A stretch of DNA of 64,000 bases, taken from contig NC_087252.1 in the NCBI RefSeq assembly GCF_037042905.1, positions 21,948,001 to 22,012,000 on the forward strand. Reading direction: 5' to 3'. Shown here in pieces: positions 1 through 56,667 of the stretch (within the stretch, counting starts at the first letter, position 1; the number at the start of each line of letters is the position of its first letter). The stretch is from Lytechinus pictus. Lineage: Eukaryota. Under the pieces are notes generated by a model, which had not been told where the DNA came from, did not search any database, and worked only from the letters and a program-made list of their open reading frames with translations. Made by a program: the position numbers and the translations under genes.

Positions 1-557
1 TTCACGAAATGCCAAACGATGCAACCCGAAGTGTTGTTGAAGTCTATGACGAAGTCGGGAATCGTCGAAAAACCGAACCAGAAAAGGATCGATGCAACCC
101 ATACGGAAATATTCGCGTAGATCGCCTTTCGCTTGCTCCTGGTGGTGAAATGCCCGATGGGATCGTAGGTTGCTCGGTGTCTATCGATGCAGATGGTGAC
201 GATGATCAGATTTGATACAAACTGGACGCTGCTGAAGACACCGTAGAAGATCCGGCACGAGTTGTTACCCGGGAATGGGAATCGTCTAAAATAGGTGTGC
301 AAGGATGTCACGATAATGACAAACCCAAAGAGAAAGTCCGAGATTGTAAGGTTTATAATGAAGTAGTTGTTGTAGCCACGGAGTCGTTTCTCGACCGCAA
401 AGGCGGCCAGGCTGAGGCCATTGGTCGTGATGATGAGGGCCACTAGAAGCAGCGGTAGGAGTAGGGCGTGGAGACCTCGTCTCTCATCATCCGTTCCCGT
501 CGCTACTGTTTCGTGTTGCTCCTGAAAAACATCGGTCGTATTCCCGTCCCCGTACAT
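1..557 (-). CDS. GPCR A, exon 1 (partial; class A orphan receptor, TM1-ECL2), closest paralog of gene F
   Basis: Manual translation from ATG at 557: MYGDGNTTDVFQEQHETVATGTDDERRGLHALLLPLLLVALIITTNGLSLAAFAVEKRLRGYNNYFIINLTISDFLFG...SCRIFYGVFSSVQFVSNLIIVTICIDRHRATYDP...; open to the window edge, so absent from the ORF track. Confidence 0.93.
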   Translation of the reverse strand, partial: MYGDGNTTDVFQEQHETVATGTDDERRGLHALLLPLLLVALIITTNGLSLAAFAVEKRLRGYNNYFIINLTISDFLFGFVIIVTSLHTYFRRFPFPGNNSCRIFYGVFSSVQFVSNLIIVTICIDRHRATYDPIGHFTTRSKRKAIYANISVWVASILFWFGFSTIPDFVIDFNNTSGCIVWHFV

Positions 558-1284
558 GACTCTTTCTATTGGGCTGGTAATTATATGTTTCTAAATTTTG
601 AATTTTACTAGTGGCACTATAATCGTTGTTTAAAGGATAACTTACTACTGTTACATTCTTATCAAACCCAATGCAAATAGGGCTACATGCTCTTGCTAAC
701 CGTCATTCAAGGTAGTACTTCGATACTAAAACGCTTTGACTTATATACGTGGCAGTATCCCTTGAAAGGAATATCATACAAGGCAGTGTCCTTTGATATG
801 GATATCACCTTTTCAATAGATAGTTAGGATCAAAAGAATCAGTGACGAAAGGTACTATTTCGTTGTAAGATAATGAGTAAAAGCGTTATGTATAACACGG
901 TTGGGGAGAAGTGGTTGTGTAACTATATCGATCTGTTGGTTAATAAAGGTATTTTTTTTATAGAGTACAGGCCTGCGTGTATTGAGGACACGACAATATA
1001 GGCCTATAGATATCTTAAAGGATATCACATGGGATAAATCAATAGTTCATAATTCATAAGAACATTGAAGACAGAAGAGGATACAATGCAGTGAACAGTG
1101 ACATAGTGAGCTAAATACTAGGACCGCAGCATTGCGTATGTCTGGGTCAAGGTTTCTAAAAGATCGGGAACAAATAAAGAGAGAAAGTGAAAATATTTGC
1201 CTTTTTAAAATGGAATTCTTAATTTTGATAAATGATGACATGGTATTGATCACGTTGAAATATTATCACACGTCATCGTTCAAT

Positions 1285-1485
1285 TCCGTTCCCGGCCGCG
1301 TCAGACCAAAAGACGTTAAAAGATTGGAGTTGCTGCTAACCTGTTTGGCGTTCAACGATTTAAGGGATAGAGCTTCGTCGATCTGGCTCTGCAGAGCGGC
1401 TGCCGGGCCGACGATCAATATTGGGCAAAGCTTATTTTCGGAGTATTTTATTTCATTTCTATTTCGAATAATAGAATATGGATTT
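1285..1485 (+). mobile_element. Headless SINE fragment resembling a Meta-domain SINE; related copy at ~6905-7060
   Basis: cccggccgcgtcagaccaaaagacgttaaaa...gctgctaacctgtttggcgttcaacgatttaagggatagagc; absent from the duplicated position upstream of F; family name is from recall. Confidence 0.5.
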
Positions 1486-2713
1486 TCATCTTTTCTTTTC
1501 CCCTACTTTTGTTTTCTTGGTCGTGAAACTTTGGAGACTAGCGCCCAATGCCCCTGTATCTATACGGCAGCGATATCGACGTGTCCCTGATTAATTCATT
1601 CATCACCTCTGTCAAAAAAAAATTTCGTTTCTATTAGGAATATTTTTTTTCCAACTGTTCTTACAAAGACGTTGGCCTTCGCGATAAAGTGCTTCTATTC
1701 ACACCTTAAAAATGTTTTATTGTCCTAGTGGAAAGAGAAAAGGCAAGTACATGTAGGTCTATCTAAGAAGATTTTTTTTTGCAAACCAAGGCAAAGTATG
1801 GCAATGACATCAGGTGTTGGGTAACTAAAATCATTTCTGTCATTTAAGAAAACAGCTACGCTTTCGTAACAGCTTAACCTGGAAACAGAAAGAGGTTATG
1901 ACATACTTGCATATCAATTTGAATGATATTGCACCCCAAGATTTTCTCTTTCTCAAATACCCCCTTTGTCTTTGACCACGCTGCAGAATTAATTTCCTGC
2001 AAAATAGACCATATATATTTCACGAGGATGGTGAGGTTTTTTAATGATAATGGTAATGATGATGATGCCATGATGATAATGATGATGATAGTGATGATAA
2101 CATAAAGAAAGAAACGTTGATATATGCATGTGAGAGAGTGATAAAAATCTTTAGAACTCTGGTCTAATTTTGTGGTTTAACTATGGATAGCCAATTGTGA
2201 CACCAATCTCTAACATTACAGGTTCATTCCATAAGTACATTCGACATTCAAACCATTTATAACTCTCTGGGGATGGCGAATAAAGGAAGGACAAAAGACC
2301 GCTGTAAACGTAAGAAACATGCAATGTAAACAGAATTTTGACATGTTCAACAAGTTAAGATTGCTTTCAGAAAACGGGCTATAGTGCACATGTGAGAGTG
2401 GACACAAGGATAATAATCACTGGTTTAAGTTACCACGTAACACCAATTCTATTTTTTCACCAAACATATACCTGAATGATTACTTATTTGTGTGTCTGAA
2501 CATCGTACAACAGACCAAAGTGTCGGGGCATTAATTTGCCATAGAACATGATGACAAACGGTGATTTCGTGTTCATATTCATCTTCTATCTTAACAAAAC
2601 GTGTGTTTAATTTTACAGTCATAAAAGTTCTACAATATATTTTGAAACTACGTTTTGTAATAAACCATGGTTCTGTATCTGAAAAATGGTGAAGGCGGGT
2701 GGGGGTAATTATC

Positions 2714-3016
2714 CTAGCGACGACAATACCGGATAGGGTGGCAGAGCAAACCAAATACGGTTTTCCTAAAGAGCGGTTGGGAGATGACGTAACAGATCGG
2801 ATTGAGTAGACCGTTCACATAAACGAGCCAAATAGATCCCCAATAAGCCCAGAAGGGTAGCTGCGGATAGGCGAGCGTTGGATCGATAGTGATGACGATC
2901 GATATCACAGTCATGGGGAACCACGTGATGAAGAAGGCCATGGCGATGAAGAGTAGGGTCTTGGTTGCCCTGCGAACCTCAGAGGACGACTCGCGAATAG
3001 CAGCTTTCTGAACTCC
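2714..3016 (-). CDS. GPCR B, exon 2 (TM6-TM7-helix 8)
   Basis: ttttatctAG acceptor, then GVQKAAIRESSSEVRRATKTLLFIAMAFFITWFP...WLVYVNGLLNPICY...YCRR*; 303 nt in frame with exon 1. Confidence 0.95.
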   Translation of the reverse strand, partial: GVQKAAIRESSSEVRRATKTLLFIAMAFFITWFPMTVISIVITIDPTLAYPQLPFWAYWGSIWLVYVNGLLNPICYVISQPLFRKTVFGLLCHPIRYCRR

Positions 3017-3506: not shown

Positions 3507-4292
3507 AGATATTGTCTTTACTTGAGGGCGCTGTTTATTTTCCTTGACATCACCTTCTGCTAGGCCTTGATCTGACACTGTGGTGTCTTTTGTAAACTCC
3601 TTGTCGATGTGCTTTCCACCGGCGATCCCTTGAATCTTTACGAAGATCCGTATGTAGAGAATCAACGTTATGGTGAAAGGGATGATGAAGCGGATCAGTA
3701 CAGTCGACAATTGGGCGATTGGGAACACAGAATACCAGTGAAAACACCTTGAACCAAGGCGAAACTGTAGGAAATAGTCAGGAACCGTCGTGAATGAAAA
3801 CCAGAAAACAAGAGAAACGATCCACACGCAGATGTTGGTGTAGAGCGCCGTTCGCTTTCTCCGTCGTGTGAAATGTCCGATGGGATCGTAGGTTGCCCGG
3901 TGTCTGTCAACGCAGATGGTGACGATGATCAGGTTAGATACGAATTGGATGCTGTTGCTGACACCGTAGAACACCTTGCACCTAACCGGAAAGGGAAAGG
4001 GAAGACGCCCAAGGTACATGTGTAAGCATGTAATGACGAGAAAAAACCCGAAGATAAAGTCCGAGAGAGTGAGGTTTATGATGAAGTAGTTGTTGTAGCC
4101 ACGCAGCCGTTTCTCGACGACAAAGGCGGCCAGGCTGATACCATTGATCGCAATCATAATGATCACGAAAACCAGGAGTAACAACGGGATCCATCGATTT
4201 ATATCAGGCTCTGTACCTACTTCTGTAAGTTCTGTACCTGCTATTTCTGTATATTCTTGAAGTAACTCAGTTGTATTGCCTTCAGCGTACAT
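3507..4292 (-). CDS. GPCR B, exon 1 (TM1-TM5 + ICL3, 262 codons)
   Basis: ORF 3444..4292 with NLxxSD (TM2), C3.25, DRH, W4.50, RFIIP (TM5); GTAAGT donor at 3506 after ...VKTIS, phase 0. Confidence 0.95.
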
Positions 4293-8820: not shown

Positions 8821-9769
8821 AATGTTGATGCTTGATTTTGTAATGGTTATTTTCAATTCCCCCTCTCTTGTTTCAATCTGATTTGAAGATTCTTTTTTTT
8901 CTGTACCCTATTTCGCAAAATGATTTAAATGTACATGAACATAATTGTATATATATGTGTTCATGTATGTGCATGTATGTGGATGTCGGGGTGTGTGTGT
9001 GTATAATTATGTATATGAATGTTGCAGCTCGATGTAAAATGGGATTAGGGATGCTATGATATGTTGATTTTTTTTCTGCAAATCATTCATTATTGATTAA
9101 TTGAGGGTTAAAGGCTCAGTTTAGTTGGGTTTTTTAGGTATAACATATTTTTAAAGCATTCATTCCATCCTTATTTGCTTCAGTTTTTTGGTTAATATTT
9201 TTGTGTAATCTTGTTGATATAAAATTAATGAGGATATGAAAATGTTGGTGTATATATCTTGAGTTCATGTAGATTATTATTAGTAGTATTATGTAAATTA
9301 CAGGGTGCATTTGTGTGTGGTATTAGTCATATAGAGACTACTTTCCCATTGATATTGGTTGAAGTAAAATCAATAAACATATGTAAAATTCTATATTAAA
9401 CAAAAAGAATGCTTGAAATGCAAGCAGTGCTCAGACCTTTTTCACCTTGTGTTGTATGGACTGCAGAAAGCGTGCGCTGGGCTTAGCAAATGAATATCTT
9501 TATCGATGAACCTCATGGCGGAGATATCGATTTCACGATGGTTTGGTAGGAAGGCAAAGGTGAACGGATGAACGGCACAGACTTTTTCCATTCGAATCAA
9601 GTTTTCCCTGGCCATAATGGTAAATAAGATGGCACTGTTATCGATTTTTATCTTCAGAAAATTTTAATCATGAACAAAACGGTGAAAGGACACAAAAAAT
9701 GATGAAGGTTGTGGAATTATGAAGAGCCATTTTTTCAATGATACAATCAACAGGCAATATTGACTCCTG

Positions 9770-10062
9770 GGTCCCGTAACACAAATGTTAGCAATTAATC
9801 GTACGCTTGATTTTTACGATTGATTGTACATAGTATTCAATGCAACCAATCATAGAAAAATGCTCTACGATCATTGCTAAGCGTTGTGTTACGGGCCCCA
9901 GGGCTCCGTAACAAAGATTAGCGATCAATCGCTAAATGGAGCGACCAATCGCGATCAATGTTGCACGCGCATTTGGTTAAAAATACTGACAAGGAACCAA
10001 TCAGAAAGTTTCTTACATATTTGCGATTTATTGCTAAGCTTTGTGTTACGATACGGGGGCCC
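9770..10062. mobile_element. Two head-to-tail Harbinger-like MITEs (duplicate at ~30148-30440)
   Basis: CTG|GGTCCCGTAACACAAA...TTGTGTTACGGGCCC|CAG|GGCTCCGTAACAAAG...; CWG flanks. Confidence 0.65.
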
Positions 10063-10541
10063 GGGCCAACCGAAACGATAGCGTTTAATTCCAATGATAA
10101 ATGCCTACTATCGATCGGTTTAGAGTCGGTTTCGTTGATGTGACTGTAGCGGTAAAGACATATGAAGTCTATTTAAATCGGTGACAAGACATTTGCTCCG
10201 GCGACAATTGCTTCGGGATATATTTCGTCTAAGATGTATATGGTTGGGTAAGGGTTGCAATAGGAGGTTTATGTTAGGTTTAGGGTAATAGCTTTAGGAT
10301 AGTGTTAAATCCAAGGTTAAACTTGCTCGTTTCATTTTTGTGTAGAATGTATAGAGAAGCAATTGTCGCAGGAGCAAATGTCGTGGAAACTTTGAAATCG
10401 TGATCGCTGGGACACGAAAACGGCCCTCATTCTTGGGAGAAATGGTGATTCCAGAAGGGGGACATACGTTAACAACAATGGTAGGGTTGATGGAGAAATA
10501 TTATCAATTTTAAAAGCTTTTTTAAAGTGATATGTATTTAA

Positions 10542-11126
10542 AGGAGAATGAAACCTTTGGAATAAGTAGGCTTGTGTCGAAACAAAAAAATCAAAGAAAA
10601 AGAACAAAGAAAGTTTGAGAAAAATCGGACAAATAATGAGAAAGTTATGAGCATTTGAATATTGCAATCACTAATGTTATGGATATCCTCCCATTGGCAA
10701 TGCGACAAGGATGTGTGATGTCACATGTGAACAACTTTCCCTGTGAGGGACTATAAAATACCCCTAAAATGTCCCTTTTTGCACTTTCTTATGGTGATAC
10801 AAACTCTTTATCCATGATGTATTTTTTTTAACTCTGTATTACATGCCCTCCTATAGAAAGAACACATGATCTACTGATAGATGTGATAAAAGAGGCAATT
10901 TAAGCGAAATATATACTAAAGTAATGGGGAGAGTTGTTCGTAAGTGACATCACACATCTCTGTCGTATTGCCAATTTGAGGATCTCCATAGCATTAGTGA
11001 TCGCAATATTCAAATGCTCATAACTTTCTCAATATTTGTCCGATTTTTCTCAAACTTTCGTTGATCTGTTTCTTTGATTTTTCTGTTTTCACACAAGCTA
11101 TCTTGTTCCAAAGGTTTCATTCTCCT
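10542..11126. mobile_element. Non-autonomous Kolobok-like DNA transposon with ~200-bp TIRs
   Basis: TTAA|AGGAGAATGAAACCTTTGGAA ... TTCCAAAGGTTTCATTCTCCT|GTAA; absent from the D block. Confidence 0.8.
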
Positions 11127-11464
11127 GTAAAAATGACTCATATTAACAGTAAAAAAAAATTTTTTGGGGGTAAACAAGTGCATACATACATAGTTACTAA
11201 GAATGCATATAACATTTCTATTTAAATGCTGGATAAAAGAGCACTGTTGATTTCAATGATCTTAGGCATTGGTGCCATGGCCGGGGATCGAACCCCGAAC
11301 TCTCACGTGTCAGGTGCTTAGCCACCCTTCCACATGATAACAAAAAATCATAACTTGAATGATGATTCCAGTGAAAAGTAAGGCTAGTGACGAATTTTTA
11401 GCACGTGTGAAACCAAACTAGAATCACGAATTCGAATTCTACTCCAGAGGTGAATTCCAATTAA

Positions 11465-12061
11465 AGGGGAATCCAGCCATGGCCATAAAATGTTGTGTTG
11501 GGAAGGAGAAAATAAATTTAACAGAATGGTGATAGTTTGAAAGAAATCGGACAAGCAATAAGAAAGTTATAGCTGCTTTAAAATTGAGATCGCTAATACT
11601 ATGTAGATTTCAAATTGGCAACTTTGTAAGTAAATTATGACAAGGGGCAAGGACAATTTTCCCATAGGCCATGTACTTTATTATCAGGGATTTGTGGTTT
11701 TCTCCTAAGTACCCATTCCCCAGGGGCAGTAATCTAAATATAACCCAGGTAGTATATTGTTTTAAGTCCTCATGAAAGAAAAATATAATTTAAAAAATAA
11801 AACTTTTGGGAAAAATGAAATTTTAGACATAATATGTATTGGAGTACATGGAAGAGTAGTCCTTGCCTTACATCACTATGACATCCCATATGCGGCCAAT
11901 TATGAAGTCTCCATGGGTATAGTGATTACCAATATTTACGACATTTAAAAATTCATAACTTTCTTGTTGTTTGTCCAATATTGTTCAAACTTTCACCTAT
12001 CAACTTGTCTGATTTTTCTTTTCCTTATAAAAACAAGTTTTTATTTGGGTTTGATTCCCCT
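11465..12061. mobile_element. Non-autonomous Kolobok-like element
   Basis: TTAA|AGGGGAATC ... GATTCCCCT|TTAA with imperfect ~120-bp TIRs; absent from the D block. Confidence 0.8.
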
Positions 12062-13229
12062 TTAAGTTTCACTCAAATTATGTACGGTACGAATTTCACG
12101 TGTGAAAGGCTTGACCTCCAAAACACCTTGGGGCGGAGGTTACGTCTCCTTTCAAGCACTTCCGTAGATAATACAATTGTCATACACTCGTCGTATCGAT
12201 GCAGTGCTTTGATTGACAAGTCACCCAAGGTCACATACCGCATTCGCTCGGGAATTCGAATTCAAATTGCACTTTCGAGTGTGCGTGTGAAAGGTCCAGT
12301 TATTCTAAAGACGATTTGTTCAACATTGAGAGAACATATCGAGCATGAGCATGCACAGTTCTGCCCATAAAAGTGTATCGAAAAATATACGGAGCTGGAA
12401 GAAAACTATACGGAGCTATTTGCAGCGATGTGTTTCCCTATCAAAATTATACTTTGTCACATGATGACAAATTAGGCTTTGAGAAAGTATAGTGGGACTT
12501 ATGGCTCCGTCATTATCATAAAAACATTGAAATTTGATGAATAATTGTTAAAACATAAGGCAATGTATTACACAGTACTAATAAATTTAAATTTGATAAA
12601 AAAATAACAAGGAGAAGACATACCGCATCAGTTGGTCATCTTATAACTAAATATACATTAAAAAAAGGAACAACAAAAACGACATGTTTCAACGTAAAGA
12701 TATATGGAAGGAAAGGTGGGTGATTAAAAGAAAGACAGGAAAAGAATAGGAATCGAGATTAAATGTATTATAGGAACGGCACGGACAACGGACAATAGTG
12801 AGTGATACTGTTATACCAAGCTTACTGATTAAAAGGAACGATGTGATATGTTTACATGTGTTTAAGTAGGTATTTGAATGAATGAAGAGATTTGTAATAC
12901 CTTATATGCTCAGGCAGTTGATTCCAATTGAATGAGCTTATATAGGTACAGGATGTCTTTATCTCATGTAATGTTATTCACGAGAGTTTTCCTTTAGATA
13001 TGATTAATCAATGATGAAAAGTCCTTTATTCTAGTCAAGTCCCCTTATCATTTGAAATACAAAAAAGAAGAAAGTATTGAAAAATATCGGTGGCCTTTTA
13101 TCATTTGAAGTATAAAAGCGTCTACGAAAATGAGCTCTGGAATCTCGATGCCCTATCAAAAAAACATTTTAAAAAGCTCAATTTCCAGTTTTCTTTTATA
13201 TCTATTGATTTTTATATCTATTTATAACT

Positions 13230-14180
13230 GGCTGTCGGTTTAGTTTGAGAAAGCATCATAATACACTCACATGCTATCCTGCCTCTCTTCAATAAAGTAG
13301 CAAGCTCTCTTAATAATAGTTCCCATACGATAGGAATGTTCTTAGATTTCTCTAAAGCATTCGATACGATAAACCACGGAATTATTTTATATAAACTGTC
13401 ACATTATGGTTTCAGAAATAATGATTTAGATTGGTACCGTAATTATTTACATGAACACCAACAACATGTCTGCATTAACAGTAATATGTCACAACTGAGA
13501 ATTCTGACTGCAGTGTTCCTCAGGAATCCATACTTGGCCCGCTGCTTTTTTATACTTTATATCAAGTATTTTAGCAGATCCTCGGATTTATTTTCATTTA
13601 CTTTGTATGCAGATGACACCAATCTTTTTTTTTTTACACAAACATCGAACTCTTTGTCAGGTGTCAATTCCGAATTAAATTCCTTGGCAACATGGTTAAG
13701 GCCGACAAATTATCCCTTAATCTAGAAACCAATTTCATGTTATTTAGTAATACATTAATCGAATTCTAATAGATAACATACAAATACAGCAGGTAACTAC
13801 CACAAAGTTTTGAGGTATATTCATTGAGGACAAACTTTCATTGTCAAAACATCACATTGACAATTGGTGTTATAAACAAACTCAAATGGATATTCCCCCG
13901 AATATTCTTAAATCATTATGTTCAACGTTAGCCCTACCCCCACTTAAATTACGGAATACTATTACTAGCATTGGGAAATAGTGCGATATATACGTTAAAT
14001 AAATTGTCACTGTTACAAAAAAAAAATATGCAGATTATAAGTCAGGTTAATCTAAGACTCGGATTTATTTTCATTTACTATGTATGCAGATGACACCAAT
14101 TTTTTTTTTACAAAAACATCGAACTCTTTGTCAGGTAGTCAATTCCGAATTAAATTCCGTGGCAACATGGTTAAGGCCGA
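13230..14180 (+). mobile_element. 5'-truncated CR1/L2-group LINE relic (reverse transcriptase)
   Basis: [23 protein letters not shown] and LYADDTN RT motifs, many frameshifts. Confidence 0.88.
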
Positions 14181-15683
14181 AACATTGAAAAATTTATTCA
14201 GAATATCGGTGGTCTTTTACAATTTGTATGAAAAAAGGATACAAAAAGAGCTCTTGAATCTCGATGCCCTAATACAAGAAAATGAGAAAAAAAATTAACC
14301 TATAATATCAAGTTCTCACTTTCTTTTACTTCTTATAATTTTCTATTTATAATCATTGATTTGATTTTTTTATGTAAAAGAAAATATTGAAAACTTAACT
14401 CCGAACTCTCGGTGTCCTTTTATAATCTGAAATATAAAAGAAAATATTTAAAGAGCTCTAAAATTACCTTGATTATATCGATTTCTGTAGTGACTAACAA
14501 AATTTTACTTTATATAAAATCATGATGCTCTGTTAAAATGATTATATTGTATTCTGTAATGTAAAAGAATTACTTTCTATGACCATTTAATTCTCGCCGA
14601 TCTTCCGCTTCTTTCGAATACAACCTCGATATCGCATTCGTTCTTTAGCCCCTCATTACATCCGGGGCCTGTTTCAGACAGAGTTGAAATCAGACGCAAC
14701 TCTACAAATCAATCGGAAAGTGATTTCCAACCAATCAACAGAAACACTAACATGAAAGATCAATTCTGATTGGTTCCGAGTCAGTCTACTGAGCAACATG
14801 CGTATGCAACGATGATCTTGATAGGCCATTTCATTTAGCGATTAATCGCTGAGCTTTTTTGTTATGAGGCCCAGATGTACTTTATTTGATTAAAATCTAT
14901 CGTATCATTTAACCCCTTTTTGATATCCAGGCAATGCGTTGTATGTATTTCTTTAAATGAAAAAAAAATGCGTTCATTTGCTGCAATATAATGGGATGAA
15001 TTTTAGATCTTGAACATTCTTCGCACGAATCAGTGGAAATTCCAGGCAATTCTCGTTAACTCGATCTACTGCACTGCATGTCTCGGCCTAGACCCACTTG
15101 TGCAGATTCGTTCAACATTTCTTGAAATTAGACATTGCGAGCAACACTTGGTCCGATTGAATATCTTCGAAATCCCGATGGAGAGAAGTTGGTAAATTAG
15201 TAAGATACATTCGTCTGTTAAATTATCTGGACTGTGTGCGGGCAAAGATGCGACGGAATTGCTGCAGGATCAAACAGAAACCGTAGCTGCGTCCCTGGTA
15301 TTTAACTCACTGGTTACTGCACTGTATCCTCTTCTGTTCTCAATGTTCTTGTGATTTATAAACCATTGATTTATCCGATATGATATCCATTAGGATATCT
15401 ATATCGACCTATTTTCGTGTCATCGATACAGGCAGGCTTATACTCTATACCTTTATTAACCAACATATCGATATAGTTACACAACCCCTTCTCTCCAACC
15501 GTGTTATACATAAAGCTTCTACTTAAAATCTTACAATGAAATAGTACCATCCGTCACTGATTCTTTTGATTTTAACTATCTCTTGAAAAGGTGATATGCT
15601 TTTATTTAGTATCGAAATACTACCTTAAGTGACGGTCAGCAAGAGTGCCACAACATATAATTACCAGCTCCGTAGTGACAGTC

Positions 15684-16466
15684 ATGTACGGGGACGGGAA
15701 TACGACCGACGTTCTTCAGGAGCAAGGAACAGTAGCCACGGAAACGGGTGATGAGACACGAGGTCCCCACGCCCTACTCCTACCCCTGCTCCTAGTGGCC
15801 CTCATCATCACGACCAATGGCCTCAGCCTGGCAGCATTCGCCGTCGAGAAACGCCTCCGCGGCCACAACAACTACTTCATCATAAACCTTGCTATCTCGG
15901 ATTTTCTCTTCGGGATCGTCCTGATTATCCCCTGCATACACACTTATCTTGGTCATTTTCCACTCCCCGGTGATGACTGGTGCAGAGTTTTTAACGGCGT
16001 CAGCAGAAGTGTCGAATTCGTATCTAATCTGATCATCGTCACCATCTGCATCGATAGACACCGAGCGACCTACAATCCCATCGGGCATTTCACCACTAGG
16101 AGCAAACGAAAGGCGATCTACGCTAACATCGCCGTGTGGGTTGCTTCGCTTCTTTTCTGGTTCTCGTTCTCGACAATTCCTGAGTTCATTCTTGGGTACA
16201 CCGGCAGTTCAAGTTGTTTACCATGGTATGCGAAAAACCCAACCATTAATTTTGTGACCATCTGCATCCGGTTCATCGTGCCTTTCACCATCATCCTAGT
16301 CCTCTACATACGGATCTTCGTCAAGATTCAGCAGACGACGGGTCGGAAGCACATCCGCAAGGAGTTCGTTGCCAGCATTAGCCAGTCAGGACAGGGGGAA
16401 TCGGAGCAGGAAGGCGAGGAGGATGGAAATGACATGGAACAGCGCCCTCAAGTTACCAAGGAGAAG
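15684..16466 (+). CDS. GPCR C, exon 1 (261 codons)
   Basis: ATG of MYGDGNTT at 15684 inside ORF 15645..16523; same 5-TM motifs; AAG|GTAAT donor at 16467. Confidence 0.95.
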
Positions 16467-16535
16467 GTAATATTCAAACAGTCCAATTATTCTGCAAACA
16501 CAGACTCAAGTTTGACACTTTAAAGAATATTTTAT

Positions 16536-16733
16536 GGGCAATTCCATAAAATATGTACATCCGACCCATACATGTGGGACATTCATGAAATTTTCTGTCT
16601 CTGATTTCTTGTTCTTTTGACAGTCTGTAAGTTCTCAAAGGACAATGACTTGGTCAATTATGAAGTGAAGTAAAACTTGAGAAAAATGGGGGTCGGACGT
16701 ACAAAAATGTTGATTATTTTATGGAATTTCCCC
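16536..16733. mobile_element. MITE in gene C intron
   Basis: TIR GGGCAATTCCATAAAATA / TATTTTATGGAATTTCCC; right end deleted in the D copy. Confidence 0.7.
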
Positions 16734-19234
16734 TATTTTTAGAGTGAAGTCTAGACTCCAAGCTCTCTGCCTGTGTCAACTTAGTCTCACTTCTTTGAAC
16801 TTTACATTATTCACCTCAAAAGTCCTCAAATGGGGAGGGGGGCTAACTTGGGTAAAACGGTATATTTACATTACAAATTTTGATTATGGCTCTCAACTTG
16901 CAGTGGCATATCAGGCGGGGGGGGGGGGGGGCAAGCTGCCTCCCCTTGCGGATTTCACCAGGAAAAAAACGGGAAAAAGAGAAAAGTGGGAAAGAGAAAG
17001 GGAAGGAAAGAAAGAAAAAGAGGAAAGGGGAAAGAGAAAGGGAAAAAAATGAAAAGAAAGGGGAAAAAAAGAAAGAACATAAATAGGGAAAATGGAAGGA
17101 AAGCGGGAAAAGGAAAGAAGAACACGTCAAGTACAAATATCCTGAAATACTAATACATACGCATGATTAGCAAAAGAGGGATATAAATCAAAAGATATGA
17201 TTCAATGGCACTGGCAAGAATGGTGGGAAAATGGGAGAAAGAGGCAGAAAGAAACGGGAAATGAAGGTAGAACCAAAAGCTTGATTGGAAAATCAAAATA
17301 TAGAGAAAAGGGACGAGAAAAAAAGAGAATGACCTAATAACAAGACCGGGTTGCCAAGGATTGAAAAATATAAAGAACGGGGAAGAAAGGTGGATGGCGT
17401 CTATTATAAGCTTGCTAAATTTTATGCAATAATGGTCACAGTCAGGACAAACAATCCCGGGAAAATCCTTAGCCAAAGTTGGATTAGCCAAGGGCTAGTT
17501 ATATCCCCCGATATTATGTCCTAAACCTAAGTAAAGCTTTGCGCTGGCTAGATTTACCGTAAAAAGTCTGTTTACTTTGGCTTAGTTTCCAAAGCTACTA
17601 TCAAATTAGTAGAATTTAATCATTCTCAAAGGCCAATTTTTTTCTGCCTCGCTTCGCTCGCTGGCGAATTTTCCAAATTTATCCACATTTTGCTATGTTG
17701 TGCTGCCTCAAAATATTTAGTTTATTATCCGCAACTGCGTTGAAGTTAATGTGTTGTGTATGTACCCGCGATTTAATGAAACAGTGGCCATCTGCAATGT
17801 TTAAAAATATCACGGGGCTCCGGGGGCTTCGCCCCAGACCAGTGGCGGCTCCAAGGGGGAGGCACTGAAGGCATTTGCCCCCAGTGAGTTGGCCTCACCC
17901 CCGAAATTTTGAAAAAAAAATGTATAGTAAGTGTTGTCATAAGCATCCTACTAAAGCTGCAAAGTGCTCCAAAACAGCTTTTTCGTTCCTTAAATTTTGA
18001 AAATTCAATTCACTGTTAGCTCCCAATAATGTCACTAAATCTTTCAGATCATTATATAAAATTCAAAATTTCGCCTGCGCTACACACGCCCGCAGTAGCT
18101 GTCGACTGAGATAAGTACATTATCTGTTCAAATGGGGCCTTAATCCAATTTTCAAGTCAATATGCCTATGCTTCTCTCGATACGCTTCCTGCCTTCTCAT
18201 AATTTTCATAAATAAATAAAAATTCAGCTCGCGCTACGCGCTCGCATTAAAGGTTTAATTTGATAGCCATCCAGTTCATGATTACAAAAAGTGCTTATAG
18301 AACGTCCAGTTATTATCTCGGAATGTCAAAAATTTTCAGCTCGCGCTTCGCTTATAGAACGTCCAGTTATCATCTCGGAATGTCAAAAAATTTCAGCTCG
18401 CGCTTCGCGCTCGCATTATTTATTTGGTGAAATATCATTTTCATGGCCCAATGCAGTAGGGTCTACATTGAAAAAAGAATAGCTCGCGCTTCTTGCTCGA
18501 TTTTGAGATATTAGCAAAATATTTGTGTGTTGACACGCCCCCACATGTTCTTTTGCCTCCCCCGAGGTTAAAAATCCTGGGGCCGCCATTACCCCGGACG
18601 CGATCCGCATAGCACTGGCCCCCGAAAGTTCTAACAAAAAAGAAAAGATGAATGAAAAGGAAAGGAAGATGTAAGATATGATGTGATTTTCTGAATACCA
18701 TGTCAAAATCAATCTCAAAGTTAGATTCTCATGAAAAGCTGATTTTTTTCTCGCTCGCTCAGAGAGTGGAAATTGTGCACTTTTCAAGCTGGATTGAAAT
18801 GAATCAAATGACCGGGGTAATAATATGCTGTAAAGTGCTTTTAATATGGGAAAAGCGCTATAAAAATAAGCTATTATATCATTATTATTATAAATGTTTA
18901 TGCACTGAGTTATGACTTGGGAACTGATAATAACCATTGATATTTTGGTATTACATTTTAATCCTGGTTGATTAAATGCACCCTAGACACTCGAAATTAA
19001 TATAAGTAAGTTATTATTTCCACTCATTGTTTTTTCAATTTCATGGTAACGAAGCAAGCTAATTATTTGAAATGGCTGAATCCAAAAACGTAAGCGTCTT
19101 AAGGGCACACATTTCTGACTTAATCCTCTGAAAATAAGTAGGGTTGTTGCATCCACAAATGTAATAAACGCCCATAAATGTAATAGCTTTTGACGAATCT
19201 CCCAAAGACCCCATAGTCTTATCAATGTTAAATA

Positions 19235-20155
19235 ACATGGAAATATAGCCTAGTCCTTTCTACAGACCCAGTAAATCTAAGACCCAACAATCCTTTAAAC
19301 TAAGAACCGGGGTAGTGTTTCATCAACATTTTCATCCGACAAGTTGTCAGATCTGACATCTTTCTTTGATGTTGATTGGCTGAGAGGTACTGTTACTATG
19401 GTAACTGTTGGATGAAATGGGACTTGACGGATAAAACGTCCGACAAGTCCTTTCATAAAACGCTCCCCTGAAATAAACAAAGGTTTAGAACGTTGTCTTT
19501 ATTCCAGACCTTATTATTTCAAAAATTAAGAAAAGAAATCTTCAAAACAAGGATCCAATCACACCCTGATTCATGTGGAATAAAACGAGTATTAAAGCGT
19601 AGTCTTTCCTTTAGACCTGGCATGATTTTAGATTATAAAAAAGCAAATAAAAAACGAGATTATTAGATCCCACCATCTCCCTTACAACGAATAAGCAGCA
19701 ATCAATATTTAATTAAAATAGGTGTGTCTTATTTTTAAGGTTAATGTTTTGTTGTGTTTTTATTTATTTTTTTATAACTGGGTGTGGGTTAAAGAAAACG
19801 CTCTAAAGCAATATTCTTTCACTGCGTCAAAATTCTTAGGATATGTGTTAGTTTTGAAGTTTTTTTTTTCATTTTTAAAATAACCTTGTCTGAAAGAAAG
19901 ACTACGCTTTAATACTCGTGTTACTCCACAAGAATAAGAAAATGATCGGGTCTTTAGTTTGAAGATTGTTTTTTTTTTTTTTTTCAAATGACTAGGTCTG
20001 GAATAAAGTCAACACTCTAAAACTTTGTTTCTAAAAAGGTTCTTAGTTTGAAGGATTGTTGGTTCTTAGATTTAAATTTCGTTTTGTTTTGTTTTGTAAT
20101 ATTTGGTATTTTGAAAAAAATTGGTCTGGAGGAAAGACTACGCTACATCTCCATA
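19235..20155. mobile_element. Foldback-type element with long (~400-bp) imperfect inverted arms (D copy ~39040-40470)
   Basis: ctttattccagacctta / taggtctggaataaag, aacaatcctttaaactaagaacc / ggttcttagtttgaaggattgtt, gcgtagtctttc / gaaagactacgc. Confidence 0.7.
19309..19468. mobile_element. 160-bp MITE, C-specific
   Basis: GGGGTAGTGTTTCATCAA / TTCATAAAACGCTCCCC; empty site 'aagaacctgaaat' at ~39149 in D. Confidence 0.75.
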
Positions 20156-23113: not shown

Positions 23114-23416
23114 GGAGGTCAGAAAGTTGCCAAGCGAGAATCGGCCTCTGAAGTTCGCAGCGCCACCAAAACGCTTCTCTTCGTCGCCATAGCTTTATTC
23201 ATCACGTGGTCACCAATGTGCATCGTCACGATAGCCTACTCGATCGACCCGGCTTTCGTCAATCCGCGGCTCCTGGGCTGGTTATACCTGGTACCGTTGT
23301 GGCTGGTCTACGTGAATAGTCTACTCAATCCGCTTTGCTACGTTGTCTCGCAGCCGCTCTTTCGAAAAACCGTATTTGGTTTGATTTCCAACCCTATCCG
23401 GTATTGTCGTGGTTAA
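23114..23416 (+). CDS. GPCR C, exon 2 (TM6-TM7)
   Basis: ttttctctatAG acceptor; GGQKVAKRESASEVRSATKTLLF...FITWSP...NSLLNPLCY...YCRG*; 303 nt; intron 6647 bp. Confidence 0.93.
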   Translation, partial: GGQKVAKRESASEVRSATKTLLFVAIALFITWSPMCIVTIAYSIDPAFVNPRLLGWLYLVPLWLVYVNSLLNPLCYVVSQPLFRKTVFGLISNPIRYCRG

Positions 23417-23435
23417 CGTAATCGTGGATAAATAT

Positions 23436-24100
23436 TTGATTGATTGATTGATTTTATTTGGCAAGTCACCACAACATATATGCAACATGCTTGCACCGGA
23501 TGACCCACGAAAGCTCGAAAACTTATTTCCAGTGGGGTCATCTCGAGTGAAAGATATTCTTTCAATTTCCTCTTAAAATGGAAAAAAGTATCCTATTCCC
23601 TATAAGTCATTGGGAAGAGAATTGCAATGTTTTATAGCATTGTAATAAAAGGAGTTACCAATACTACCTGCTTTCGGGTAAGCAGAAGTTGTAATGGCTA
23701 TTTCGTGTATTATAGTTATGTAATTTGGTAACTAGTTTAATTAAAGTTTGATCTAATATAAATATTCGATCTATTGTGATAGATTTTATGCACGTAGTGC
23801 ATACTAAGCTGTTTTGATCTTTTGCTGACTTAAAAAAAAATCTGCTCCAGAGAGTTCGGTGTAGCCAACGTGGGTTCTGGGACCAGAACAGTTAATGAAT
23901 CTAACCTTTTTTATTCTGTATAATTTACAACTTCTTTTGATCGGATTTGTCTATGCCACTAAACCAAGCAGGGTTAGCATAGTCAAATAAACTCTGAATA
24001 AGAGCAACACAGAAAATAGTCTTGCTTTCTGATCCATACAACTTTGATACCTGTACATAAATTTCAGACGGGCATTCGCCTTTTTTACGATTGATCATAC
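23436..24100 (-). mobile_element. LINE 3' fragment antisense just downstream of gene C
   Basis: ALIQSLFDYANPAWFSG..KKL; (AATC)n tail about 20 bp from the C stop codon. Confidence 0.75.
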
Positions 24101-35301: not shown

Positions 35302-36078
35302 ATGTACGGGGACGGGAATACGACCGACGTTCTTCAGGAGCAAGAAACAGCGACGGAAACGGATGAGAGACGAGGTATCCACGCCCTACTCCTACCGCTG
35401 CTCCTAGTGGCCCTCATCATCACGACCAATGGTCTCAGCCTGGCAGCATTCGCTGTCGAGAAACGACTCCGTGGCTACAACAACTACTTCATCATAAACC
35501 TTGCAATCTCGGATTTTCTCTTCGGGATCGTCCTGATTATCCCCTGCATACACACTTATCTTGGTCATTTTCCACTCCCCGGTGATGACTGGTGCAGCGT
35601 TTTTAACGGCGTCAACAGCAGTGTCGAATTCGTATCTATTCTGATCATCGTCACCATCTGCATCGATAGACACCGAGCGACCTACAATCCCATCGGGCAT
35701 TTCACCACAAGGAGCAAGCGAAAGGCGATCTACGCTAACATCGCCGTGTGGGTTGCTTCGCTCCTTTTTTGGTTCTCGTTCTCGACAATTCCTGAGTTCA
35801 TTCTTGGGTACACCAGTAGTTCAGCTTGTTTACCATGGTATGCGAAAAACCCGACCATTCATTTTGTGACGATCTGCATGCGGTTCACCGTGCCTTTCAC
35901 CATCATCCTAGTCCTCTACATACGGATCTTCGTCAAGATTCAGCAGACGGCGGGTCGGAAGCACATCCACAAGGAGTTTGTTGCCAGCATCAGCCAGTCA
36001 GGACAGGGGAAATCGGAGCAGGAAGGCGAGGAGGATGGAAATGACATGGAACAGCGCCCTCAAGTTACCAAGGAGAAA
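35302..36078 (+). CDS. GPCR D, exon 1 (259 codons), tandem duplicate of C
   Basis: ATG at 35302 in ORF 35293..36231; AAA|GTAAGT donor at 36079. Confidence 0.95.
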
Positions 36079-42038: not shown

Positions 42039-42341
42039 GGAGGTCAGAAAGTTGCCAAGCGAGAATCGGCCTCTGAAGTTCGCAGCGCCACCAAAACGCT
42101 TCTCTTCGTCGCCATAGCTTTCTTCATCACGTGGTCACCAATGTCCATCGTCACGATAGCCTACTCGATCGACCCGGCTTTATTCAATCCGCGGCTCCCG
42201 GACTGGTTACACCTGGTACCGTTGTGGCTGGTCTACGTGAATGGTCTACTCAATCCGCTTTGCTACGTTGTCTCGCAGCCGCTCTTTCGAAAAACCGTAT
42301 TTGGTTTGATTTCCCACCCTATCCGCTATTGTCGTGGTTAA
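42039..42341 (+). CDS. GPCR D, exon 2
   Basis: Same acceptor as C; 303 nt; FITWSP and NPLCY motifs; intron 5960 bp. Confidence 0.93.
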   Translation, partial: GGQKVAKRESASEVRSATKTLLFVAIAFFITWSPMSIVTIAYSIDPALFNPRLPDWLHLVPLWLVYVNGLLNPLCYVVSQPLFRKTVFGLISHPIRYCRG

Positions 42342-42359
42342 CGTAATCATGGATAAATA

Positions 42360-46017: not shown

Positions 46018-46165
46018 NNNNNNNNNNNNNNNNNNNNNNNNNNNNNNNNNNNNNNNNNNNNNNNNNNNNNNNNNNNNNNNNNNNNNNNNNNNNNNNNNNN
46101 NNNNNNNNNNNNNNNNNNNNNNNNNNNNNNNNNNNNNNNNNNNNNNNNNNNNNNNNNNNNNNNNN
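46018..46165. other. Assembly gap (148 N)
   Basis: Run of N. Confidence 1.
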
Positions 46166-46227
46166 GTGCTGCTGATGATGACGATGATGGGGAGCATGAC
46201 TGTGATGGATATGATAATGATGATGGC

Positions 46228-50752: not shown

Positions 50753-51538
50753 ATGGACGCTGAAGGCAATACAACTGAGTTACTTCAAGAACAAACAGAA
50801 ATAGCAGGTACAGAACTTACAGAAGTAGGTACAGAGCCTGATAGAAATGGGTGGATCCCGTTGTTACTCCTGCTTTTCGTGTTCATTATGATTGCGATCA
50901 ATGGTATCAGCCTGGCCGCCTTTGCCGTCGAGAAACGGCTGCGTGGCTACAACAACTACTTCATCATAAATCTCACTCTCTCGGACTTTATCTTCGGGTT
51001 TTTTCTCGTCATTACATGCTTACACATGTACCTTGGGCGTCTTCCCTTTCCCTTTCCGGTTAGGTGCAAGGTGTTCTACGGTGTCAGCAGCAGCATCCAG
51101 TTCGTATCTAACCTGATCATCGTCACCATCTGCGTTGACAGACACCGGGCAATCTACGATCCCATCGGACATTTCACAAGACGAAGAAAACGAACGGCGC
51201 TTTACACCAACATCTGCGTGTGGATCGTTTCTTTTGTTTTCTGGTTTTCATTCTCGACAGTTCCTGACTTTTTCCTGCAGTTTCGGCTCGGTTCAGAGTG
51301 TTTTCACTGGTATTCTGTGTTCCCAATCGCCCAATTCTCGACCGTACTGATCCGCTTCATCATCCCTTTCACCATAACGTTGATTCTCTACATACGGATC
51401 TTTATAAAGATTCGAAGGATCGCCGGTGGAAGGCACATCGACAAGGAATTTACTGAAGACACCGCAGTGTCAGATCATAGTCTAGCGGAAGATAATTTCA
51501 AGGAAAATAAACAGCGCCCTCAAGTAAATACAATATCT
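50753..51538 (+). CDS. GPCR E, exon 1 (262 codons), inverted-duplicate sister of B
   Basis: ORF 50753..51574; TCT|GTAAGT donor at 51539. Confidence 0.95.
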
Positions 51539-52423: not shown

Positions 52424-52726
52424 GGAGTTCAGAAAGCTGCCATTCGTGAGTCAGCCTCTGAGGTTCGAAGCGCCACCAAGACTCTACTCTTCATCGTATT
52501 GGCCTTCTTCATCACGTGGTTGCCAATGTCTCTTATGTCGATTGTCATCACTATCGATCCAACGCTCGGCTATCCGCGGATACCCCTCTGGGCTTATTGG
52601 ATACCTATATGGATCATTTACTTGAACGGTCTACTCAATCCAATTTGTTATGTCATCTCCCAACCGCTCTTTAGGAGAACCGTATTTGGTTTGCTCTGCC
52701 ATCCTATCCGGTATTGTCGTTGCTAG
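52424..52726 (+). CDS. GPCR E, exon 2
   Basis: ttttctctAG acceptor; GVQKAAIRESASEVRSATK...FITWLP...NPICY...YCRC*; 303 nt; intron 885 bp. Confidence 0.95.
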   Translation, partial: GVQKAAIRESASEVRSATKTLLFIVLAFFITWLPMSLMSIVITIDPTLGYPRIPLWAYWIPIWIIYLNGLLNPICYVISQPLFRRTVFGLLCHPIRYCRC

Positions 52727-54309: not shown

Positions 54310-54375
54310 CATATCAAAGGACACTAGCTTGTATGATATTCCTTCCAAGGTAAACTGCCTCGTATATAAGTCAAA
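54310..54375 (+). promoter_or_regulatory. Candidate core promoter block (ATCAAAG + TATATAA) shared by genes F, D and A
   Basis: TATATAA at 54363, 35184 and 741-747(-), 115-190 bp before the ATG; deleted in C. Confidence 0.35.
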
Positions 54376-54536
54376 GCATTTTAGTATCGAAGTACTACCT
54401 TGCGTGACAGTCAGCAAGATCATGTAACCCTATCTGGATTGGGTTTAATACGAATCTAACGGTAGTACGTTTTCCTTCATGTAACGATTATAGTGCCACT
54501 GGTAAAATTATAATTTCCAGCTTCGTAGTGAGAGTC

Positions 54537-55316
54537 ATGTACGGGGACGGGAATACGACCGACGTTGTTCAGGAGCAACAAGAAACAGTAGCGACGGGAA
54601 CGGATGATGAGAAACGAGGTCTCCATGCCCTACTCCTACCTCTGCTCCTAGTGGCCCTCATCATCACGACCAATGGTCTCAGCCTGGCCGCCTTTGCCGT
54701 CGAGAAACGACTCCGTGGCTACAACAATTACTTCATCATAAACCTTACAATCTCGGACTTTCTCTTCGGGTTTGTCATCATCGTGACATCCTTGCACACC
54801 TATTTTAGACGATTCCCATTCCCGGGTAACAACTCGTGCCGGATCTTCTACGGTGTTGTCAGCAGCGTCCAGTTTGTATCAAATCTGATCATCATCACTA
54901 TCTGCATTGATAGACACCGAGCAACCTACGATCCCATCGGGCATTTCACCACCAGGAGCAAGCGAAAGGGGATCTACGCGAATATTTCCGTGTGGGTTGC
55001 ATCAATCCTTTTCTGGTTCGGATTTTCGACGATTCCCGACTTCGTCATGGACTTCAACAACACGTCCAGTTGCTTCGTTTGGCATTCCGTGAACGCGATC
55101 GGCCAGATAGTACCAGTATTCATCCGGTTCATCATCCCTTTCACAATCATGCTGATAATCTATGTGCGGATCTTCGTGAAGATCCAAAAGATAGCCGGTA
55201 GAAAGCACATCGGCGAAGAATTTAATGGGGACACTTCATGGTCGCGGCAGAGCAAATCGGACGGCGGCGACGACGCTGATGATTCCAAAGAGGGTCCCAT
55301 CACTACCATAGAATCT
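54537..55316 (+). CDS. GPCR F, exon 1 (260 codons)
   Basis: ATG at 54537 in ORF 54528..55331; TCT|GTGAGT donor at 55317. Confidence 0.95.
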
Positions 55317-55959
55317 GTGAGTATTCATTAACTCCATATCAAAGCCCGTAGTCGGGGGGGGGGGGTTGTTCAGGGGTTCGAGCGAGCCCCTAACTTGAAA
55401 ATTTTCAAAAGCAAGAAAAATATGGGGAGGAAAAGGAAAGGAAGTGAAAGGGGTCGAACCCCAAATTTGAGAACCGTGCGTGACTACAGGCTTGCATACT
55501 CCTTCATAATTCCATTCCTTTTTTATTCATAAGGGAGTGCACAGCCCTGTGTTTGGATACGGTACGTCAGGAGACAATGCAATTCCAAGAACATAGTCAT
55601 CCTGCATAGGCAAAAATCAATCGCATTCCATCTCCATGTTTTTCACGACACCATACAAAAAGTTGGTTCCATAAAAAGGAAGAAGAGGTCGACTTGATAA
55701 AAAAACGAGTGACTTATACGCGCACTTCGATCGAGAGTTTTCAATGTCTTGAAAGCAATCCCGGCATATGGTACACTCCTTTTCTCGTTCAGAAGACTGG
55801 CCTCTTGGGAAAAAATGTAAGTCAAGGCCCTACCTGGTCTGCTTCGGAAAATGACAGAGATCGTAAACACAGATTCAGGGATGTGGGCCATAATGAGGCA
55901 ATGGATTGAATAAAGAGAGCATTACGTATCCATTATTGTCATAAAAGTTAATTCATGTA

Positions 55960-56220
55960 GAGGTGTGGCGCCCCAGTGGATAAGTCTCCTTGACTTTGAA
56001 CCAAAAGGTCTAGGATTCCAATCTCAGCGCAGCATCAATCTACATCCAGGTGTAGTAAATGGGTAGACCTACCTGGTTGGAAGAAATTCCTTGAATGCTC
56101 GAGCGTCTGATCAGGGTACCCATACTAGTTCCGGGGTAATTGTATGCAGCGCTTAGCAACATTGCATTAAGAGCTACATAAATGTTCCATATCTTTATCA
56201 TCATTTTTATTATTATTAAT
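55960..56220 (+). mobile_element. Decayed tRNA-SINE with L2-like tail in the gene F intron
   Basis: tRNA-like head (tggcgccccagtggataag...gattccaatc), 'ccaggtgtagtaaatgggta' central segment, 'aagagctacataaatg...tattattatt' tail. Confidence 0.6.
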
Positions 56221-56361
56221 TAATTCTTTATTCTGGTGATGCACACAATCAGTTACTACGTACATGTATAAACCAATGTTGTAACGTCCCGTATGTAAGC
56301 TGACATCATACATATGAAATTCATGACTTTTATTTTTATCCATGAATCTTTTCCCAATTAG

Positions 56362-56667
56362 GGTGGTCAGAAAGCAGTCAAGCGTGAATCAACATCCGAG
56401 GTTCGCAGCGCCACAAAGACACTCCTCTTCATCGTCATCGCTTTCTTTATTACCTGGTCTCCAGTTTCTGTCATCTCCTTCATCTACTCGATTGAACCGA
56501 CACTCATCTATCCACGGCTTCCTGACTGGGCGCTTTTGGTACCCGGTTGGCTGGTCTACGTGAATAGCCTACTCAATCCGCTTTGCTACGTTGTCTCGCA
56601 GCCGCTGTTCCGGAAAACCGTGTTCGGTTTGATCCGCCACCCTATCCAATATTGCAGAGGGAAATAA
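56362..56667 (+). CDS. GPCR F, exon 2 (not in ORF track)
   Basis: tcttttcccaattAG acceptor; manual translation GGQKAVKRESTSEVRSATKTLLFIVIAFFITWSPVSVISFIYSIEPTLIYPRLPDWALLVPGWLVYVNSLLNPLCYVVSQPLFRKTVFGLIRHPIQYCRGK*. Confidence 0.94.
   Translation, partial: GGQKAVKRESTSEVRSATKTLLFIVIAFFITWSPVSVISFIYSIEPTLIYPRLPDWALLVPGWLVYVNSLLNPLCYVVSQPLFRKTVFGLIRHPIQYCRGK

Follow-up and report, generated by a model that had tools for sequence, protein, structure and literature searches.

A tandem array of muscarinic-like receptor genes in the sea urchin Lytechinus pictus that lack Asp3.32 and carry an arginine at position 5.46

What kind of ligand could be bound by receptors that look aminergic but lack Asp3.32, the counter-ion of amine ligands? 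The question is raised by a stretch of 64,000 nucleotides of the Lytechinus pictus genome (CM073233.1:21,948,001-22,012,000, assembly GCA_037042905.1), here called the window, which holds a tandem cluster of class A G-protein-coupled receptor (GPCR) genes, named A to F in their order along it. An earlier note, made from the letters of the window, had described them as aminergic-like receptors with a charge-reversed pocket and had suggested an undescribed chemosensory or anion-receptor family. We consider the chances somewhat better than even that these are functional, signalling-competent class A GPCRs of echinoids only, derived from muscarinic receptors and amplified in an array of at least 12 genes, each of which would bind a small non-amine ligand.

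Open reading frame (ORF) listing and six-frame motif scans of the window gave five complete two-exon GPCR genes and one partial gene at the window start, the gene content first reported. Five long ORFs run from the N-terminus to the third intracellular loop (ICL3), five short ones from transmembrane helix (TM) 6 to helix 8, and a sixth TM1-TM4 ORF leaves the window start on the minus strand. A single phase-0 intron interrupts ICL3 in each complete gene, between a donor of the type GT(A/G)AGT and an acceptor made of a polypyrimidine tract and AG; it is 490 nt long in B, 6647 in C, 5960 in D, 885 in E and 1045 in F, and the spliced proteins are 359-362 amino acids long. The models are identical to RefSeq proteins of L. 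pictus, and A is the start of such a protein (Table 1). A tblastn search with the six proteins matched 11 exon segments in the window and nothing else.

We checked the residue numbering against human M1 with HMMER and by alignment to a hidden Markov model (HMM) of the family. Exon 1 of gene E aligns to M1 without gaps through TM3 and TM5, with Ser opposite D105(3.32), Arg opposite A196(5.46) and both P5.50 and Y5.58 in register. Position 3.32 reads F/S/S/N/S/V in A to F and position 3.33 S/N/R/S/S/S; the counter-ion Asp3.32 is missing from all six genes and from the whole 25-row clade to which they belong. Position 3.36 is Q except for E in C and D, and position 3.40 is N except for I in D. 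All copies have DRH in place of DRY at 3.49-3.51 and R5.46 within the motif (I/M)RFxxP, next to F5.47. TM6 carries T-W-x-P, with M/M/M/M/V at 6.51 and T/C/S/S/S at 6.52 in the five complete genes. The aminergic fingerprint of Trp7.40 and Tyr7.43 is present in every copy within and around the window, and TM7 has NPxCY. The residues reported earlier for 3.32, 5.46, 6.51, 7.40, 7.43 and the DRH motif were thus all confirmed; only the TM7 consensus WLxYxNxLLNPxCY was too strict, as gene E has WIIYLN instead of WLxYxN.

The muscarinic orthosteric set (D3.32, Y3.33, S3.36, N3.37, T5.42, A5.46, Y6.51, N6.52, Y7.39, Y7.43) is not retained as such. The only muscarinic pocket residues kept are T5.42 (absent in the F-type genes A and F), W6.48 and Y7.43. 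At 28 canonical class A pocket positions, the E-type gene pair B and E as well as gene F have no acidic residue, and R5.46 is the sole basic one, whereas Glu3.36 is added in C and D, together with R3.33 in C and H5.39/H7.35 in D. Charge-reversed is thus an apt term for the E-type and F-type genes, but an ambiguous one for C and D.

The only Pfam match of the genes is 7tm_1, which scores 81-95 bits with exon 1 and 42 bits with exon 2 against a gathering cut-off of 30.5. In a search of the PDB with the family profile, muscarinic receptors were the best match (M4 1e-47), followed by H1 (5e-39) and by 5-HT2A, D2 and H3 at about 1e-35 (H3 ~5e-35). Foldseek likewise placed M5, M3 and M4 at the top in the PDB and human M1 at the top among the Swiss-Prot models, with TM-scores by target of 0.82-0.88 at 18-24% identity. 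Both searches bear out that the genes are aminergic-like.

The best database matches of the window genes are proteins of L. pictus and Lytechinus variegatus. An exhaustive search of 1.84 billion representatives returned 29 proteins with E<1e-30, followed by a long tail; four groups can be told apart among the matches. Group (i) is an echinoid clade with DRH (Lytechinus, Strongylocentrotus, Diadema), to which the window genes belong, with S/F/V/N/I/R/G and never Asp at 3.32. Group (ii) is a second echinoid clade with the fixed pocket F3.28, Q3.32, N3.33, G3.37, DRY, R5.46, N6.51, R7.39 and W7.40. Group (iii) consists of holothurian groups, likewise without D3.32, and group (iv), in the tail, carries the full muscarinic signature from D3.32 to Y7.43 as listed above. 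In a maximum likelihood (ML) tree of 94 rows (quick IQ-TREE run with posterior mean site frequencies, PMSF), branch support was 99 for the DRH clade, 98 for the second echinoid clade, 99 for the D3.32 clade and 100 for the 13-row subclade of the window genes (all starred). The tree puts the window genes in a supported clade of their own apart from the D3.32 sequences and not inside the muscarinic clade, but it is unrooted and the order between clades is not resolved. For the placement among all aminergic families, the ranking of the PDB matches was used.

Group (ii), which lies outside the window (L002:404-1684), includes P0037, P0039, P0040, P0042, P0043, P0045, P0046, P0050, P0052, P0053, P0055 and P0056. 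Its pocket is unchanged from Diadema to Lytechinus and has two arginines and no Asp, and this group would be a stronger candidate anion receptor than the window genes. P0037 was found on short contigs of run assemblies, where its ORF is uninterrupted, a pattern suggestive of transcripts or of a gene without introns. In sea cucumbers (Holothuria leucospilota and others) the muscarinic-like proteins P0044, P0047, P0057 and P0051 have S3.32, H3.33, H3.37 and DRW, and carry the deposited name 'Muscarinic acetylcholine receptor M1'. Among echinoderm genes similar to muscarinic acetylcholine receptors (mAChRs), loss of the amine anchor seems to be widespread.

Within the DRH clade, R5.46 is found only in the subclade of the window genes, that is in all Lytechinus copies and in P0006 and P0211, their orthologues in Strongylocentrotus purpuratus. 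Two partial proteins of S. purpuratus (P0017 and P0018) are exceptions, and P0028 has Lys at this position; other members of the clade have T, V, M, S or Q. The tree requires at least 4 changes for R5.46 and 2 for D3.32. A single origin of R5.46 was rejected, as forcing all R5.46 rows together costs 161 log-likelihood units (approximately unbiased test, AU p about 1e-6) for a constraint group that was chosen after the tree was seen. The codon is CGC/CGG in the window genes and AGA in a member of group (ii). R5.46 is thus a recurrent state among these Asp-less receptors, with independent recurrence outside the subclade, and is fixed in the subclade since before the split of Lytechinus and Strongylocentrotus. 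The conserved cation of the earlier note is invariant in the subclade, but it is no hallmark of the family.

The window holds six copies, as counted before, yet calling this a six-gene cluster understates the array. We fetched neighbouring loci on both sides (locus L001 of CM073233.1 overlaps the window at 385..1 with 100% identity) and found at least 12 genes over at least 113 kb of CM073233.1, of which the window genes are the middle. The copies from these loci have S or F at 3.32, and Q3.36, R5.46, W7.40 and Y7.43 throughout. The left border lies beyond 21.908 Mb. At the right border there is an unrelated gene with a weak match to the SPATIAL domain (L005:16727-22657 of CM073233.1, about 22.026-22.032 Mb).

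The array was built by repeated segmental duplication, direct as well as inverted (Table 1). The sister pairs are 88% (B/E), 93% (C/D) and 95% (A/F) identical at the protein level, and the remaining pairs 58-77%. Synonymous divergence (dS) is 0.14 for B/E, 0.07 for C/D and 0.15 for A/F, and 0.75-1.2 between the three gene types. In the ML tree E is nearer to P0002 of L. variegatus than to B, so at least some of the amplification took place before L. pictus and L. variegatus diverged. Over their first ~60 codons (N-terminus and TM1) and in the upstream DNA, C and D are 91-95% identical to F and A at the nucleotide level (15684-15860 and 35302-35480 compared with 54537-54720), while the rest of exon 1 of C and D is about 60-70% identical to F. 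This indicates 5' gene conversion or unequal exchange by crossover between gene types.

None of the 12 array copies contains a stop codon or a broken splice site. The ratio dN/dS is 0.42 for B/E, 0.46 for C/D, 0.16 for A/F and 0.22-0.31 for deeper pairs. The class A anchors N1.50, D2.50, R3.50, W4.50, P5.50, P6.50 and NPxxY are all present and the activation core is completed by Y5.58 and W6.48; the G-protein-coupling machinery is intact save for His in place of Tyr at 3.51 and Val at 6.30. The proteins also have an N-terminal NTT glycosylation sequon, the cysteine pair of C3.25 and the second extracellular loop (ECL2), and C-terminal cysteines after helix 8. AlphaFold2 (AF2) models were made for P0002, which shares 93% identity with E, and for P0008, which shares 99% with C. 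They show seven helices and helix 8, with a predicted local distance difference test score (pLDDT) of 85, a predicted TM-score (pTM) of 0.82 and a pLDDT of about 97 in TM5 near R5.46. The extracellular N-termini are disordered in these models. They are strongly acidic (6-9 Asp+Glu vs 0-1 Lys+Arg in 23-31 residues, e.g. 50753-50845), a charge opposite to that of the fixed Arg5.46.

In the reading we favour, a muscarinic-type aminergic ancestor would have lost the Asp3.32 counter-ion and the muscarinic tyrosine lid, with the core activation machinery retained and the pocket residues W4.57, R5.46, F5.47, W6.48, W7.40 and Y7.43 fixed. The orthosteric pocket of each paralogue would accommodate a small ligand other than an amine. 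A polar or anionic group common to these ligands may be recognised by the fixed residues, the guanidinium of Arg5.46 among them, and specificity would be tuned at 3.32, 3.33, 5.39, 6.51, 6.52, 7.35 and 7.39, the positions that vary, in the manner of a chemoreceptor array. The ligand is probably other than a classical amine. An anionic ligand that contacts Arg5.46 is a reasonable supposition, because position 5.46 is pocket-facing in aminergic receptors and the E-type and F-type genes have no acidic partner for it. We infer a sensory as opposed to an endogenous function.

There is also a more far-reaching proposal, which we think unlikely: that echinoids turned muscarinic-type amine receptors into receptors of anionic small molecules (carboxylates, sulfates, zwitterions) at least twice, with Arg replacing the Asp anchor. 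The two conversions would be the amplified R5.46 subclade and the older, pocket-conserved Q3.32/R5.46/R7.39 clade. If true, this would be the first lineage of anion receptors of aminergic descent, and a possible way into echinoid chemical ecology (e.g. sulfated predator or algal cues).

Several points weigh against the favoured reading. That the side chain of Arg5.46 faces the pocket we infer from the gap-free register with M1 and the role of 5.46 in aminergic receptors. Glu3.36 in C and D could neutralise Arg5.46 or bind an amine. No transcript-derived record was found for the cluster: the exact-protein look-ups for P0007 and P0008 were empty and the sources are all genome annotation. Exon 2 of C and D differs by 9 non-synonymous and 1 synonymous changes, a proportion that differs from exon 1 at p=0.03; tested against neutrality, however, this 9:1 excess lacks significance (p=0.24), and positive selection there was not upheld. 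Moreover, the entropy and Fisher tests reported next use related sequences and a generic pocket list of our own choice, and are indicative only.

Among 12 subclade members, the pocket has a mean entropy of 0.92 bits compared with 0.57 at 156 other transmembrane positions (Mann-Whitney p=0.005); the six residues named above as fixed are invariant. The three sister pairs differ in 11 of 66 pocket comparisons and in 26 of 408 other comparisons (odds ratio 2.9, p=0.007, Fisher), and each pair differs at 3.32 or 3.33. Tandem amplification and variation at ligand-contact positions, by which a chemosensory array can be recognised, are thus both found, and the pocket diversifies faster than the remaining helices, as the suggested likeness to the trace amine-associated receptor (TAAR) arrays would have it. 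The same variation bears on a possible structural role of Arg5.46. It could be part of a polar cluster with Q/E3.36, N3.40 and S/T/C6.52 at the pocket floor and bridge TM3 and TM5 in receptors with constitutive or ligand-independent signalling, orphans tuned by expression and not by a ligand. Q/E3.36 and N3.40 are indeed nearly invariant alongside R5.46 in the subclade, a salt bridge of Glu3.36 and R5.46 is possible in C and D, and with DRH for DRY and no E6.30 the classical ionic lock is absent. The chance of this we consider small, as pocket positions are the fastest-changing ones in the membrane and differences between sister pairs fall preferentially on them, which is hard to explain without ligand-driven selection; furthermore, N3.40 is also found in DRH-clade members without R5.46.

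About as improbable are receptors for an endogenous lineage-specific messenger, e.g. a metabolite or a lipid mediator, which would serve internal physiology and not chemosensation. The F-type gene is conserved in S. purpuratus with the same pocket residues (P0211) and overall selection is purifying, both of which speak for such receptors. The intron of the window genes points the same way, since the chemoreceptor candidates published for echinoderms are genes similar to odorant receptors (OR-like), which are said to have expanded independently. Recovered copy numbers, however, vary strongly by genus, with a minimum of 12 in L. pictus and of 7 in L. variegatus against a single cluster in S. purpuratus. 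Taken with the pocket diversification, this is more typical of environmental sensing.

The genes might still encode amine receptors, for acetylcholine, histamine or trace amines, which bind their ligand in a non-classical way like the teleost TAARs with Asp5.42. This would be most plausible for C and D, where Glu3.36 is a possible counter-ion. The closest relatives by profile and by Foldseek are amine receptors, W7.40 and Y7.43 are kept, and relocation of the anchor has a precedent (PMC4695389). Against it stand A, B, E and F, whose 28 pocket positions hold no acidic residue and whose position 5.42 is Thr or Pro. Muscarinic D3.32, Y3.33, Y6.51, N6.52 and Y7.39 are all replaced, and an ammonium ligand would be repelled by the positive charge fixed at 5.46; we judge the amine explanation to be quite improbable.

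Decaying or non-functional duplicates, or haplotypes assembled in tandem, are very hard to credit: sea-urchin genomes are highly heterozygous and the sister pairs are 88-95% identical, but the 12 copies are intact with dN/dS below 0.5, and a haplotype or assembly artefact is ruled out by pair dS of 0.07-0.15, by inverted and direct arrangements on one contig and by L. variegatus orthologues, with E grouping with one of these and not with B.

The coordinates of the genes, duplicated segments and neighbouring array members are collected in Table 1.

Table 1. Receptor genes, duplicated segments and assembly gap of the window, and further array members on CM073233.1 (window positions unless given in Mb).
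Feature	Position	Strand	Description
Array members left of the window	E-type 21.909-21.912 Mb; F-type (P0012) 21.918-21.920 Mb; E-type 21.922-21.929 Mb	-
Array members left of the window, continued	F-type 21.934-21.936 Mb; E-type (P0004) 21.938-21.940 Mb	-	followed by A and B
Gene A (F-type), exon 1 only	1..557	-	exits window start; full protein P0195 (361 aa), exon 2 outside window; F3.32; 95% amino acid identity to F
Gene B (E-type), exon 2	2714..3016	-	TM6, TM7, helix 8, stop codon; AG acceptor, phase 0; M6.51, W7.40, Y7.43
Gene B (E-type), exon 1	3507..4292	-	N-terminus, TM1-TM5, part of ICL3; GTAAGT donor; S3.32, N3.33, R5.46; protein P0205
A+B segment	1..5872	.	inverted segmental duplicate of 49150-55093 (E+F), 85-90% nucleotide identity (self-blastn)
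C duplication unit	9300..27026	.	direct duplicate of 29660-47488 (D unit), 77-92% nucleotide identity (self-blastn)
Gene C, exon 1	15684..16466	+	S3.32, R3.33, E3.36, R5.46; protein P0201
Gene C, exon 2	23114..23416	+	downstream of 6647-nt intron
Gene D, exon 1	35302..36078	+	N3.32, S3.33, E3.36, I3.40, R5.46; protein P0200
Gene D, exon 2	42039..42341	+	downstream of 5960-nt intron
Assembly gap (N run)	46018..46165	.	intergenic, within D duplication unit, outside every gene
Gene E, exon 1	50753..51538	+	S3.32, S3.33, Q3.36, R5.46; protein P0208
Gene E, exon 2	52424..52726	+
Gene F, exon 1	54537..55316	+	V3.32, R5.46; protein P0196
Gene F, exon 2	56362..56667	+	V6.51, W7.40, Y7.43
Array member right of the window, after C, D, E, F	P0009-type gene 22.019-22.022 Mb	+

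The assembly gap begins 3.7 kb past the stop of D (42341) and ends 4.6 kb ahead of the start of E (50753), and tblastn found no GPCR-like sequence near it. By self-blastn its flanks are collinear with the paralogous C unit (the block end at 45170 corresponds to 25234, and the block start at 46226 to 25714), hence order and orientation are consistent across the gap. Together these results rule out that the gap is part of a gene, and no claim made here rests on it. The ORF 45942-46307 on the minus strand, which spans the gap, is an artefact of the N letters.

Besides the receptor genes, the window contains a reverse-transcriptase fragment (Pfam RVT_1, E=1.6e-7) at 13336-13725 on the plus strand, upstream of C. 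This remnant of a retrotransposon was copied along with the C/D unit, and its paralogue lies near 32011-32971. Between the two units, at 28026-28466 on the minus strand, there is an ORF that encodes a DUF4817 helix-turn-helix domain (E=6e-7) and is probably what is left of a DNA transposon. ATG/ATGATG-rich microsatellites at 58906-59002 and 60187-60384 (period 3 with 66 copies; period 33 with 2.9 copies) yield spurious Met-rich ORFs at 58761-59147 and 60187-60705.

The genes are already annotated, and what appears to be new is the description of a subfamily with an Asp-less, Arg5.46 pocket. In the literature we found no published description of a muscarinic-like, Asp-less subfamily with Arg5.46, while orphan aminergic-like receptors without Asp3.32 are not rare and lineage-specific expansions of echinoderm GPCRs are already known. 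It had been expected that homology pipelines would misname these genes as amine receptors, and the databases indeed give them at least 6 mutually contradictory amine-receptor names; the TAAR names on some RefSeq models are likewise automatic. Counts of serotonin, muscarinic, adrenergic or TAAR receptors in sea urchins that are taken from automatic names would therefore mislead. If Arg5.46 anchors an anionic group, the array would be a concrete and mutationally testable case of a re-purposed amine pocket, as would the better-conserved sister clade with two arginines, and its genes would be candidates for sensing the chemical cues, of which little is known, that guide sea urchins when they feed, avoid predators or settle. 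If it anchors no anion, they would be one more lineage-specific expansion of orphan GPCRs in a phylum known for them.

Of the known receptor systems, the muscarinic receptors (M1-M5 and invertebrate mAChRs) are the most similar, being the best profile and structural match with a gap-free alignment of TM3 and TM5. The window genes have N1.50, D2.50, C3.25, R3.50, W4.50, W4.57, P5.50, Y5.58, W6.48, P6.50, W7.40, Y7.43 and an NPxCY-type TM7 in common with them. They differ in that D3.32, Y3.33, S3.36/N3.37, A5.46, Y6.51, N6.52 and Y7.39 are replaced, at an overall identity of about 18-24%, and in having DRH, a short ICL3 of about 50 residues and a C-terminus that ends just past helix 8.

The histamine receptors H3 and H4, to which the earlier note had compared the charged position in TM5, have Asp3.32 and Glu5.46. 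The window genes have the aminergic fold and a charged 5.46 beside F5.47 and P5.50 in common with them, but with S/F/V/N at 3.32 and with Arg, of the opposite charge sign, at 5.46. The analogy thus holds for the position and not for descent, as the profile matches to H3 and H4 are weaker and the nearest relatives are muscarinic.

Among vertebrates, the TAARs are the classic example of amine receptors that became chemoreceptors. Like these olfactory receptors, the array is aminergic-derived, amplified in tandem and diversifying in the pocket around fixed residues. There is no common descent, however: TAARs arose in vertebrates from other amine receptors, and the present family is limited to echinoids, with muscarinic receptors as its nearest named relatives. 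One clade of teleost TAARs lost Asp3.32, moved the acid to Asp5.42 and still binds amines (PMC4695389), whereas the window genes have Asp neither at 3.32 nor at 5.42, which is Thr or Pro here, and B, E and F have no acidic replacement.

In echinoderms, the surreal-GPCR groups A-F were reportedly defined by Raible et al. in 2006 on S. purpuratus sequences. These groups and the OR-like groups of starfish and sea cucumbers document lineage-specific GPCR expansions in the phylum (PMC5442662; PMC7042368). They resemble the present array as rhodopsin-type expansions of single lineages, clustered in tandem in both orientations. The subfamily of the window is small, has an intron in ICL3 and is clearly muscarinic-like, and the accessions of its S. 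purpuratus relatives are absent from the supplements of PMC7042368.

The nearest parallel for the pocket itself is the echinoid clade with Q3.32, R5.46 and R7.39. It is also confined to echinoids and muscarinic-like, and it combines the lack of Asp3.32 with Arg5.46 and W7.40. It is nevertheless a separate clade, which differs from the array by DRY, a second Arg at 7.39, N6.51 and its AGA codon for R5.46.

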